From positions 30,070,001 to 30,134,000 of the forward strand of contig OZ004607.1 in the NCBI GenBank assembly GCA_963924565.1: a stretch of DNA of 64,000 nucleotides, written 5' to 3'. The first letter of the stretch is position 1. Every line of letters begins with the position of its first letter. Below the pieces are notes generated by a model that saw only the letters and a program-made list of their open reading frames with translations, ran no database searches and was not told where the DNA came from. Made by a program: the position numbers and the translations under genes. This document shows positions 47,323 to 57,262 of this stretch, piece after piece. The DNA is from Ascidiella aspersa (taxonomy: Eukaryota).

Positions 47323-50300
47323 TCACACTTTTCTTTCGTAGGCGATCAGCTCGTAATCAAGTGGACTAAACACAGCCCCCACTGCGCCCGCGTCCAGCTT
47401 TGGCATTTCACCCGGTTTTGCCTCGAACCTGAACCTCTGGACCATAGAAGTTAGAAAGAGAAAGAGCTCCATCTTTGCCAGCTGCTCTCCTAGGCAGAAT
47501 CGGGGACCCACTGAGAAGGGAATCACGTATTTGGACTTGACGAAGTTGCCCTTCTCGTCGATGTGTCGGTCCGGGTTAAACTTGTCAGGTTGGTCGAACA
47601 GGTTCGGGTCGTTGTGAACAGCCCAGATATTTGGGGTTACCTGTACAGGTAGATGGTTCAAGGTTTGTAATGTATTTATCCAAACTATTCATTGCATATA
47701 TAAGCATCATTATTTAAAAAAAGGTTACGCGGAGCTAGCGGTTTGCTTTATAATGTGCCCCAAAAGGTTGTTTTTGAATTTATTGGTATAAATTAAACAC
47801 TTTCAGTCCTGATTAGTTTAAGTTTGCTCACTGACTTTCCGAATCAAGAACTGTGTTCTCAATAGTTAATGGCTTACCGTCACAAAATTTTACACTCAGA
47901 AGCCGTTTACTTACCGTTGTGCCCTTTTTTATCTTGTATCCATAGATTTCGGCGTCCTCAGAGGCACAATGAGGAACCGACAATGGAATAAGTGTGCGGA
48001 ATCGTCCAATCTCGTGGATAAAGGCGCTGCAGTAAGGCATCTTTTCCTTCATCGAAAAAGAAGGGCGGCCCTCGTCACCTTAAGATATAAGAAAAGCAGT
48101 TAGCCAAAAAATATTTATCAACCAATATACGAAGCATAACGACCACAACGCAAATTCCCCTAAACTAAACCATACGTTAAACAGAACTTCAATGGTACTA
48201 TCGAGGCCATTATCCAACACTGTTGTTATATTGTGTAGCCCCAGTTGGTTATCATAAATTCAATAGATTGTTATTTAAACGAATTTATAAAATAGAGGCT
48301 TATAGGTACCAACGACGTCGATAATCTCTTTGTACAATTTCTCTTGTATCTGTGGATAGTGAAGAAGACAGAGCAGCGACCATCGCAATGTGCTAGAAGT
48401 CGTCTCTGTCCCGGCCTCAAACAGGTCTCGCATGTATTGCATAAGTTGTAGTTTCTAAAAAATAAAAGTTTCAGCCCTTGATCATAACAAAGTTTATACT
48501 TAAATCAATAATGGGAACTTGCGGCCCGCAGAACGATAATATGAGCCATACGCTGGCGCCTATACGAACGAATACCATGACGTGTAAACAAGTTAATCGC
48601 AAAATTAGTTCATCAAGTTGTATCTGTAAATCTAGCAACATAAAGAGCACTGTGGCCTAGCGACTTGATTACTAAGTGTCAGAAATATAGATAGAAAATT
48701 TAATATGTACATCATGATCTTTTAACTAAACAATATAAAGTTTTATAAGCGCAAGAAAGGGGCAATGTCCACATGGGGAAAGTGCTGACGATTTCTTTAG
48801 AGAGTTCATTCAGTGTTTAGGGAATTCAAATAAAAACAACTTGCATGGATTTATATAGGTAAATTTAGGCCCCTAAAGAGTTATACTAACAGTGCGTAAG
48901 TTTGAATGCCAAGTTTCACAAAGCTGTACGAGGTTAAAAATTAATTTGTGGCCTAAATGTTAAATTAGAGGACGCAGTATTGAATGAAGTGGGAATGATG
49001 CAAATAAGCAGTAATTATGTATTTTCACATGGAAAAATTTGAAAAAAGCTAAAATGTAACGTACGGTAAAGGTGTCCGTTCCTTTCTTCATTTCCACCAA
49101 AAAGGCATCGATGAAATCTCGAACATTGTCGGGATCCAGACTCTCGTTGTGTTCGTCGACCAGCACTTCAAACTTGTCTGGCGTTTTTAATGAATACAAG
49201 TTTATTATCAGACATAGGCTAACAAAAAAAGTCCCTTTGTAAATGTACATTATACGATAAAAGCACACAATTGGAGAACATTTTTATATTTGAATAGATA
49301 TTAATAAGAATATCAAAGCCCATACAGAAGTAGGTATCATTTTGAACGTTTCGAATAACTCTTTATTCATTTTCAACATTATTCGAAACGTTCAAAATGA
49401 TACCTACTTCTGTATGGGCTTTGATAGTCTTATTACGTCTTACTACAACCTCCAACCATTGTGCTCCAATGAATAGATATTAATACACGGGGGTTAGCTA
49501 AGTTACTTTGCAATATTTTCTTGGATATTTGGATCGAACCAAAACATTACAGCACTTTTACGACTTACCAATCCATGCTTTCAATTCGATCCTGAGTTCT
49601 TGCATCACACCAGAAAACGGTGGAACATTCTCCAACCAAGGAACGAATGTTAAGATCGTGAAACACGTAAGTATGCGAGGGTTGCTGTTCCTGTATTGCA
49701 TTATTCCCCACCGTTAAAGTAAGTATGTGTGCTGAAAAGTTTTCTGAATTACGTAGCTCATTTTCATTGTGTTTTTTTTTTTGTTTTATGTACATTTTGT
49801 AGGCATTTGTTTAAAGAACCGGAAATTTTTTTATGGCGGAACAACAGGAAAAGGTGGTATTTTGGGATATAAACGTTAGGGCTTAACGAAAATAGATATA
49901 ATAATCCATTGCAAACAATATTTTTTTATATTTTATCATATAAAACGGTAAAAAATATTTTAGTCGCTCGTAAAATCTTTCTAGAAGAGAAATCATAATT
50001 TTCAATAACATAATTTTGTCGTATGTCATGATTAGGGCGAATATTTTTTGACTTGTCAAAAAAAGTCAAAATTTTGTCAAAATTTACACGTTAGGTCAAA
50101 ATTTGTCAAAAATTTGTAAAGTCAAAATCAAATAAAAATGCACATAAATCGTTTACAAAGTTAAAAAAAATATATAGTTAGCTTTTTAAAATTCGTCATT
50201 CAGTTGTTTTGAAATTTATCGTTCAATTTCATCAAAAAAATTTAGTTTTGATTTGTGTTCAAGGTCATTTTAACCGTATTATATTTTTATTAGAGCAACA

Positions 50301-51964
50301 TACGGTATAAAAAACGCGTGATTAATGTCGCCTAGCTCATTTAAACCAATGTATTTCTAACAGGTCAAAATTTAGTCAAAATAAATCATATTTAGGTTAA
50401 AATTTGTCAAAATTTTAATTTTTTAGGTCAAAATATCCCATTTTTTAGGTCAAAAAATATTAACCCTATAGTTATGATATTTAAGAAACGGAAACATAAG
50501 TTGACACCTGAAACTAGATTTTAGTGAATATATTTCTGTAATTATTTAGAAAACGTGAACAAATCCTCTTACCATTCTTTTAGAGAATCTAGTAGGTCAC
50601 CAAGCCAGCGATCGCCATATTCAAATCTTCTTCCAAACGCCACGCCACAAATAACGTTAGACACCGTATGGGCCATTAAAATCTACGAAAAGACCCGAGG
50701 AAATATAAATGCATTATACATAAAGGCGACAAGTTACGAACAAAATTTGATTAGTTCTTATCTTACTTCCATGGACATGGCCTTCCCTTGTTGCTTTCTA
50801 ATTTCTTCAGTAAGGTAACCCGCTTCTTCTATAATCCTGTCTTCCATTCCTCGCTTTCCAAGACCAAACCTGAACACAAGAAAGCAAAATGTTGTGTTGG
50901 AGCATACTATTTTGATTTACCTTAGTTCGTAAACAAAACGTTAACGAAACGTTCGTCGAAGTTATAAAAGAGCTTGCATTTCGTAAATGTGTTTTGTCTT
51001 TTAAGGCACTGAGCTTACACAGAACAATCATATATTTGTATTTGTTTAAGCTAGATTTGTTCCGGAGTGCAACAGATATCTAAAACCATGTTATGCACTG
51101 CTTACCCTCGAAGTGTCATTAAGCCAAACTTTCTCTGACTCTTCCAAGTTTTTCCATAATCCAGCATCGCTAAGCCATGGCCTTGAGTAAGAACTTCCAA
51201 AATAGGAATTTTAGGTCTGCCCGAGAAATGATGTCCATTTTTCACAAGCGCCTTGTAGAAAACAAGAGCGTTTATAGAAAACAAAACTACAATTAAACAA
51301 GATTGTAAAAGTAGGGCGAGTGGTTAGATCAGTGGTTTCCAAACCTTTGTAAAATGTTGAGAAACCCGTCTAAGTGCAACATTATAAGAAGTTACTTGCA
51401 GGCGTTTCACAATGACAAACGTACAGTTGTCTACGGAATGTTTGGAATGGGTGAAAACCTACTGAGATTTACAGTTTGAAAAGCATAAACTATAACCTCT
51501 AATTTGTTTTTCATTCCAGCCTAAAGCCGATCGTTTGTTGGCCAGAATATAATTTAATCGAGTGTACATTACTTTGGACCTATATTGGTCGAATATATAT
51601 ATACCCTATACGGGTAAATAGGGATGTATTCTGCACATAAAACACAAAAACAGACAGCTGTCGCGCTGTTGCGCGTTCTTTTAACTCTGTTAATATACTA
51701 TTTTTTTGTTACCTCATTGATGCTGTCAAAGTCATTCAGGACAACCCAGTCATCACGGCCCATGCGAACCGACATCACTTGGCCATACTTCTTCGCCCAT
51801 TTTTTGAATATACGCTCGGGTGAGCTTCCTGCAAAAGGAATAACCCCAAGAAGGGGAACGCCCCTTGGCCCAGGAGGGAGCCCTTTCGGTCTTTGGTACC
51901 AGTACAACAACATTATACATATTGTAACCACAGCAAGGGCAGGTAGCGATATCGCTTCTAGCAT
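47323..51964 (-). CDS. Cytochrome P450, CYP2 clan (CYP-E); complete, 9 exons
   Basis: Exons 51964-51713, 51251-51106, 50869-50767, 50682-50573, 49690-49569, 49177-49065, 48454-48310, 48078-47915, 47640-47323, all [28 protein letters not shown]. Confidence 0.95.
49302..49435. repeat. Long inverted repeat (57-bp arms, 20-nt loop) in CYP-E intron 5
   Basis: 49311-49358 is the exact reverse complement of 49379-49426; extends 9 bp further with one mismatch. Confidence 0.95.
50033..50468. mobile_element. MITE in CYP-E intron 4 with GTCAAAAT repeats
   Basis: TIR TAGGGCGAATATTTTTTGAC / GTCAAAAAATATTAACCCTA. Confidence 0.75.
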
Positions 51965-57000: not shown

Positions 57001-57262
57001 TGACAAGTTCGACCCGGGCCGACACAGCGACGAGAAGGGCAACTTTGTCAAGTCCAAGTATGTGATTCCCTTCTCGGTGGGTCCCCGCTTTTGCATTGGT
57101 AAGCAGCTGGCAAAAATGGAGCTCTTTCTCTTTCTTACTTCCATGGTGCAGAGGTTCAAGTTCGAGCCTAAGCCCGGTCAAATGCCTGATATAGAAAATG
57201 CTTCAAAAGGATTGGTCTTCGCGCCGTTGGAATTTGATCTGATAGCCACCGAGAGAATATAG
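54031..57262 (+). pseudogene. Cytochrome P450, CYP2 clan (CYP-F); intact exons 3-9, no local exons 1-2 (5'-truncated or unconventionally spliced)
   Basis: Exons 54031-54133, 54301-54410, 54698-54819, 55231-55343, 56112-56256, 56616-56779, 56948-57262, with no stop or frameshift. [24 protein letters not shown]. No PPGP or WxxxRKF exon seen on + between 52000 and 54030. Confidence 0.8.

Follow-up and report, generated by a model that had tools for sequence, protein, structure and literature searches.

The window analysed here, a stretch of 64,000 nucleotides from Ascidiella aspersa (assembly GCA_963924565.1, contig OZ004607.1, positions 30,070,001 to 30,134,000), is occupied by an array of nine-exon, clan-2-like cytochrome P450 genes, recognised by exon-wise tblastn. 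Our subject is one member of this array, CYP-F, which consists of exons 3-9 on the plus strand (54031-57262) and has an opposite-strand neighbour, CYP-E, on its 5′ side. CYP-E is a complete nine-exon P450 gene (47329-51964, minus strand), with exon 1 at 51722-51964, which matches the Pfam family PF00067, exon 2 at ~51106-51254, exon 3 at ~50767-50868 and exon 9 at ~47332-47640. Exons were located one at a time by tblastn with CYP-E and CYP-F peptides, all searches and counts being done per exon, and the resulting map covers 124 kb: the window, 20 kb before its start and 40 kb past its end (window numbering is continued there). Exon-3 matches in the window mark six genes, A, B, C, D, E and F. 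Exons 1 and 2 are present in all eight paralogs other than CYP-F, namely A to E and three genes beyond the window end, E′, F′ and F″.

The part of CYP-F that remains is well preserved. Exons 3 (54031-54133), 5 (54698-54819) and 6 (55231-55343) are open and bounded by AG and GT; exon 4 lies at 54301-54410; exons 7 (56112-56256, with the I-helix) and 8 (56616-56779, with ExxR) both match PF00067, as does exon 9 (56948-57262), which holds the heme-Cys loop and the stop codon. Together these exons measure 1,072 nt and contain no internal stop, leaving a frame open over 357 codons, and the splice sites are canonical throughout (seven of seven acceptors AG, six of six donors GT). P450s are defined by the heme-Cys loop F..G.R.C.G, the ExxR motif and an acid-alcohol pair in the I-helix, and the CYP-F translations contain all three, the I-helix as AGTETT. 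Pfam matches to exons 7, 8 and 9 have E values of 9e-12, 4e-12 and 8e-35 and span profile positions 263-460 of 462; exon 4 (37 aa) gave no Pfam match. The first-pass annotation of this DNA had described exons 3-9 as intact, with canonical splice sites and the expected motifs, and the translations, exon flanks and Pfam matches bear this out. Because it lacks the membrane anchor, the PPGP hinge and the helix B-C region, CYP-F is a fragment of a P450 family member and not a complete one.

The same annotation saw no plus-strand exons 1-2 upstream of CYP-F, and tblastn, six-frame reading and blastn all agree. When the CYP-E exon 1 and exon 2 peptides were run against the whole window (tblastn, E ≤ 10), four strong exon-1 places and four strong exon-2 places were found, all assigned to B, C, D and E. 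The suggested tblastn of exons 1-2 over 52000-54030 revealed no N-terminus, the best match in 51965-54030 being one of 12 aa with an E value of 0.92. None of the six-frame open segments of at least 30 aa in 51900-54100 resembled a P450 N-terminus when judged by eye, and blastn over the 124 kb with the exon 1-2 segment of F′ gave no match in 52000-54030. An arrangement with the CYP-F exons 1-2 upstream of CYP-E, and CYP-E nested in a long intron, was rejected because tblastn found no plus-strand exon-1-like match between 29100 and 54031. The ATG of CYP-E (51964) and exon 3 of CYP-F are 2,066 nt apart on opposite strands, and the annotation had pictured a single exon 1-2 module serving both bodies, with exon 2 ending in the phase that CYP-F exon 3 needs. 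The phase was read correctly: exon 2 ends after two codon bases, and exon 3 supplies the third. This phase is, however, common to all nine paralogs, and thus implies no special link between CYP-E and CYP-F.

The missing exons are accounted for by sequence past the window end. In a search of the same genome with 52000-54030, the left 1,199 bases recurred at 98% identity and the right 827 bases at 97%, both downstream on the same strand of the same chromosome and 5.4 kb apart. Blastn showed that they belong to a block present twice in direct tandem, copy 1 at 39988-58245 and copy 2, which abuts it and runs past the window end, at 58247-82017. Three segments align between the copies: 39988-40310 with 58247-58566 (97.5%), 40358-53198 with 58815-71639 (99.4%), and 53204-58245 with 77015-82017 (96.5% over 5 kb, including CYP-F and F′). 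The copies join at 58245/58247 with one extra (filler) base and no homology between the ends, and the 124 kb contain no N characters. A listing of open reading frames in the left part of copy 1 (39900-47300) brought out nothing of use here. Copy 2 carries F′, a complete gene (~75792-81031) that starts 11.8 kb past the window end, with exon 1 at 75792-76037, exon 2 at 76666-76815 and exons 3-9 at 77843-81028. Exons 3-9 of CYP-F and F′ share 92-100% protein identity per exon, so the earlier statement that CYP-F is distinct from its paralogs holds inside the window and fails beyond it.

Between 53198 and 53204, copy 1 is without 5,375 bp whose counterpart in copy 2 (71640-77014) lies 7-13 kb past the window end. 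The absent segment takes in ~4.1 kb of sequence preceding F′, its exons 1 and 2 with the intron between them, and ~200 bp at the beginning of intron 2. In F′ both exons are open, with an ATG, a hydrophobic anchor, PPGP and GT donors, and the exon 3 acceptor flank is identical between CYP-F and F′. The interval between CYP-E and CYP-F can therefore be divided into the E-proximal part of the old E/F intergenic region (51965-53198), which both copies keep (52000-53198 vs 70448-71639, 98%); the deletion junction (53199-53203), consisting of five filler bases with no repeat between the edges; and the last 827 bp of F intron 2 (53204-54030, plus strand), which match from 77015 onwards and end in the exon 3 acceptor. 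The direction of change is given by F″, a further complete paralog (95386-99850), whose homology is with copy 2 as far as the right edge (76651-77014 vs 95886-96255, blastn) and with copy 1 right after it (53205-53545 vs 96257-96584, blastn). Since this outgroup shows no break at the right edge, possession of exons 1-2 is ancestral and copy 1 carries a deletion. CYP-F lost its head by deletion; the exons 1-2 once taken for a shared module are CYP-E's own, and CYP-F formerly had its own pair. Among the four options first put forward, recent truncation or misassembly had been called the simplest, and the sister copy 18-24 kb downstream, with its 5,375 bp more, bears out that choice.

RNA evidence came from one sample with the same species label (run X4, raw reads, of which ~6% were read), mapped on 51095-57094 at a 95% threshold together with three DNA-type contig runs (X1-X3). 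CYP-E (or E′) is expressed in X4, with a depth of 15-18 on exons 1-2; 10 reads span its intron-1 joint (51250>51712), and 21 loose ends at 51104 read on into CYP-E's own exon 3. Exons 3-8 of CYP-F had depth 0 in both directions, and depth was also 0 over 52095-53694 although the adjoining CYP-E promoter is active. Only three joints are listed in X4, none of them strand-changing, and none of the strand-changing kind is listed in the three DNA runs. The X4 results show no joint, loose end or leader among those listed at the acceptor 54031, and no recurrent leader at the 5′ end of CYP-E. Exon 9 did attract reads (56963-57094, depth 16.6), but these are cross-mapped E-type mRNA: 33 loose ends read an exon 8/9 junction that has 1 mismatch against CYP-E and 9 against CYP-F or F′.

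These data leave hardly any likelihood for the three mechanisms that had been proposed to supply CYP-F with a head, namely trans-splicing of the CYP-E exons 1-2 onto it, an inversion switching which body is joined to exons 1-2, or a spliced leader (SL) on exon 3. The points in their favour are confined to the head-to-head geometry and the compatible, array-wide phase. CYP-F's own exons 1-2 are accounted for by the deletion, every other paralog has its own pair, and exon 2 of CYP-E runs into exon 3 of CYP-E. The junctions that would reveal a borrowed head, exon2(E)-exon3(F) or SL-exon3(F), are not listed in X4. For the inversion, a search of 47000-57500 for inverted repeats recovered only the homologous exons 7-9 of the two genes (78-87%) and one intronic palindrome. 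In Drosophila mod(mdg4), common 5′ exons are reportedly trans-spliced to 3′ modules on the opposite strand. CYP-F resembles that system in layout only, as a set of 3′ exons without 5′ exons facing an opposite-strand gene. Unlike mod(mdg4), it has a deletion to explain the missing exons, shows no trans-joint, and is a single headless module, not one of a series.

We next compared the two copies with the DNA runs, of which X3 comes from another study and bears a different organism label, at 29 diagnostic places between 52086 and 54960. X1 shows the copy-2 letter only at all 29, all of them covered. X2, also covered throughout, shows copy 2 only at 24 places, both letters at one (52585) and copy 1 only at four (53957-53992). 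In X3, 12 places are copy-2 only, four are copy-1 only, none shows both and 13 have no cover. Among 40 listed variant places, 32 carry the copy-2 letter; at the remaining 8 the two copies agree and the sample differs from both. For each of the eight X2 contig pieces listed, the number of substitutions against copy 1 is identical to that of copy 2 itself. The X1 pieces are mosaic: across 54627-55813 they show 25 differences from copy 1, compared with 35 for copy 2. Two X3 pieces show 0 differences from copy 1, and copy 2 differs from one of them by 7 substitutions and 7 gap columns and from the other by 7 substitutions. Of the 31-mers in 53204-57300, half are found in F′ and around it as well, and this explains most of the observed word shares (0.57 and 0.55). 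Copy-1-type sequence is thus real, being seen in two of three DNA samples, and the differences between the copies overlap population polymorphism. The beheaded copy appears to be polymorphic among individuals; it is absent or rare in X1, since that run shows copy-2 letters only.

We consider it probable that the tandem duplication is real and that CYP-F is the 3′ seven exons of an F-type gene beheaded by deletion. A block of ~18-24 kb, made up of an upstream stretch, CYP-E on the minus strand, the intergenic region and an F-type gene on the plus strand, would have been doubled in direct tandem. The first of these copies would have lost 5,375 bp, with a five-base filler at the junction: the F promoter region, exons 1 and 2 with the intron between them, and the beginning of intron 2. 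The loss would have put the CYP-E upstream region beside the tail of F intron 2, while the second copy, outside the window, would have retained the complete F′. The remaining exons may look intact because the copies are ~2-3% apart, part of which may be inherited polymorphism; if so little time has elapsed, stops and frameshifts are not yet to be expected. Without promoter, anchor, PPGP hinge and helix-C region, CYP-F is most likely a silent, decaying relic of a kind common in P450 arrays. The sequence shows the two copies, the segment that one of them lacks, what that segment contains and that the change was a deletion, and one RNA sample shows no CYP-F transcript. Beyond this we infer three things: that the tandem exists in the animal, that CYP-F is non-functional, and the order in which duplication, deletion and homogenisation occurred.

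Several observations weigh against this account. The X1 contigs at 53199 and 53204 continue into undeleted sequence, in keeping with that run's copy-2 letters at 29 of 29 places. No listed read or contig from the public runs bridges the deletion junction 53199-53203, and both this junction and the tandem join at 58245/58247 are known from the assembly alone. Divergence between the copies is uneven, at 0-1.1% per kb left of the deletion and 1.7-3.1% right of it (0% over 50000-51999, ~1% per kb in 52000-52999, 1.7-3.1% beyond). One duplication alone does not predict such a pattern, so later homogenisation or a two-haplotype source is needed. F′ is silent in X4 as well, since its reads would map at the 95% threshold; the silence was seen in ~6% of one RNA run, and the case against trans-splicing or a leader is therefore one of absence in one sample, not disproof. 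Finally, the ratio of nonsynonymous to synonymous divergence (dN/dS) between CYP-F and F′ is 0.31, and CYP-F has suffered no stop, frameshift or splice-site loss, which makes some constraint possible.

The first two of these points would be expected if the assembly had collapsed here, that is, if copy 1 really carried exons 1-2 and CYP-F were an ordinary complete gene: nothing listed bridges the junction, and the X1 contigs at its edges enter undeleted sequence. Those edge contigs bear copy-2 letters, however, and thus report on copy 2, not copy 1. Moreover, a collapse needs similar sequence at both edges, and none is present, while a five-base filler is typical of end joining and not of a slip between repeats. 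We therefore hold a collapse to be highly unlikely.

Uneven divergence and allele-like letters point to a more serious competitor, which we nevertheless judge unlikely: two haplotypes laid in tandem (a false heterotype duplication), in which case CYP-F would be a heterozygous 5.4-kb deletion (null) allele of F′. The copy-1 and copy-2 letters segregate like alleles (X1 with copy 2 only yet mosaic, X2 and X3 with both types), and patchy divergence of 0-3% is typical of allelic variation. In X2, which may or may not be the source animal, contig word depths, themselves rough, are ~24-26 on copy-1-specific pieces and ~37-48 on copy-2 pieces; by rough arithmetic the ratio falls between the 1:1 and 1:2 expectations, and such contig depth ratios are too rough to decide. 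According to a portion of PMC9516828, false duplications occur where haplotypes are most divergent and are marked by gaps between the copies, haploid depth and haplotype-specific words, a gap being a main mark. Our blocks are like those described there in lying side by side, 0-3% apart, with allele-like letters. They differ in that there is no gap, either between the copies or elsewhere in the 124 kb, and in that the join is non-homologous with a single filler base, for which an overlap assembler should presumably need spanning reads. Under a real duplication and a haplotype artefact alike, CYP-F is a deletion derivative of an F′-type gene; the two readings part ways only over copy number, CYP-F being no additional gene under the second.

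The intact frame raises the question whether the truncated copy is still used. Transcription might begin at a 5′ exon that is new or cryptic, or at the CYP-E promoter working in reverse, in an unsampled tissue or condition, and give an N-truncated P450-like protein from the exon 3 ATG (54053-54055) or a regulatory RNA. The 357-codon frame with every splice site kept speaks for such use, as do the dN/dS of 0.31 against F′ and the small neutral chance of staying intact. Between CYP-F and F′, 30 of 1,072 coding sites differ (2.8%) and 73 of 3,914 non-coding sites (1.9%), with 15 non-coding indels and a single coding one (a 3-base insertion in F′), and the summed per-exon counts give dS 0.063 and dN 0.019, the source of the ratio of 0.31. 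Two features make this ratio lean too far towards constraint: transitions make up 19 of the 30 coding changes, and dN is about equal to the non-coding divergence. In a neutral simulation, with the rates of random substitution on the F′ exon pieces set to half of those observed, the probability of no new stop was 0.56-0.68; that of no indel, at the non-coding rate, was ~0.13, and that of no hit in the 26 splice-site bases ~0.78. The joint neutral chance that CYP-F stays intact, a rough product, is ~0.06-0.07, which is low but not negligible; a deletion more recent than the divergence, or differences that are inherited polymorphism, would raise it.

When F″ serves as outgroup, 8 nonsynonymous and 6 synonymous changes fall on the F branch; the F′ branch has 3 nonsynonymous and 6 synonymous ones together with the inserted codon, and 7 changes are ambiguous. 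These counts are too small to reject either constraint or neutrality. Six positions at which all eight other paralogs agree are altered in CYP-F alone: K to R in exon 3, G to D in exon 4, T/S to A in exon 8, and three in exon 9, I to S and, adjoining the heme Cys, L to I and E to K. Together, branch counts and F-only changes fit relaxed constraint, though they are no proof of it. Regions encoded by P450 exons 1-2 serve folding and heme binding, and a product of CYP-F would be without the anchor, the PPGP hinge and the tryptophan/arginine region of helix C. The copy is also absent or rare in X1, and RNA depth was zero on exons 3-8 and over 52095-53694 with the CYP-E promoter active alongside, which gives promoter capture no support. 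Altogether we find continued use very unlikely.

Just as slight is the chance that the beheaded copy has been kept for use, either through a captured promoter that in unsampled conditions would give an anchor-less P450-like protein or RNA, or as a silent gene-conversion reservoir for its intact twin. The traces of a reservoir would be a cluster of seven F/F′ differences within 18 bases around the heme-Cys codon of exon 9 (57090-57106), with changes on both branches, and the higher divergence of exons (2.8%) than of introns (1.9%). We note that this cluster and the excess of exon over non-coding divergence may reflect ectopic gene conversion among paralogs, with no donor identified.

If CYP-F is a deletion-beheaded relic, as we favour, it has familiar company. 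Passages of PMC4365919 and PMC4964396 describe P450 clusters as holding genes, 'pseudogenes and detritus exons' in tandem, the term 'detritus exons' being credited there to Nelson et al. 2004. CYP-F is like such detritus in being a fragment beside a near-identical full-length parent in a tandem array, and in having lost its 5′ exons and promoter in an array built by repeated segmental duplication. It is unlike them in that its seven exons carry no disabling change, and in that a single clean 5.4-kb deletion with readable ends, apparently polymorphic, made it. The locus is thus apparently a clean, young and polymorphic example of a P450-cluster relic, and it shows how intact a decapitated gene can still look. 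A single age for the duplication was rejected, as the divergence is patchy and other samples share part of it.

What we report is mostly a correction: a candidate for trans-splicing or a DNA switch turns out to be a partial gene copy whose missing head is explained by sequence past the window end. Annotated as a gene, CYP-F would inflate P450 counts. It also marks a place of structural polymorphism, whether in copy number or through a null allele, within a probable detoxification array, which could make it relevant to population or toxicology studies of this animal. Attention is likewise drawn to 24 kb of the assembly whose tandem arrangement is probable, not certain.

The array holds other relics besides CYP-F. 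Two small P450 fragments lie between F′ and F″, one exon-8-like (82455-82508, plus strand) and one exon-9-like (83654-83837, minus strand). CYP-A (1491-4397) is seemingly headless in the window, but its exons 1-2 are located 1,533 to 481 bases before the window start. Tblastn matches to exons 1 and 2 place exon 1 of B at 6787 (plus strand), that of C at 22240 (minus) and that of D at 29100 (minus).

E′, in copy 2, lies at 65782-70412 on the minus strand beyond the window end, with exon scores equal to those of CYP-E. Between the two there are 0 substitutions over 2 kb, introns included (50000-51999 vs 68448-70447), and 0.1-1.1% in neighbouring kilobases; the zero-difference stretch could reflect recent homogenisation or shared ancestry of two haplotypes. 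At four CYP-E positions (51167, 51198, 51203 and 51854) the RNA letters differ from both copies (18 of 18, 22 of 22, 18 of 18 and 26 of 26 reads), and the letters at the first three occur in X1 too, in the minority (depth 85.8 of 211.7), which suggests that the population has a third E allele. The palindrome in CYP-E intron 5 (49302-49435; 57-nt arms, 98% complementary, 20-nt loop) is unchanged in E′ (0 mismatches in 151 bases) and has no bearing on the headless gene.

One X3 contig (depth 2.6) joins 52769 to 53932 through 28 unrelated letters and so bypasses the deletion junction; either another rearrangement in that sample or a chimeric contig could account for it. The intron-2 remnant of CYP-F contains a short interspersed, high-copy repeat of ~90-270 bp at ~53590-53860. 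Of the 54 matches listed in the same-genome search, 50 fall within 53586-53866, on seven chromosome-scale contigs, and word depth at 53590-53860 reaches 26,301 in X1. This repeat also attracts, at 53695-53894, a small number of RNA reads of either direction that run off at both sides. A second high-copy repeat occupies 55495-55894 in intron 6 of CYP-F, with word depths of 13,637 in X1 and 16,333 in X2 and DNA-run loose ends on either side.

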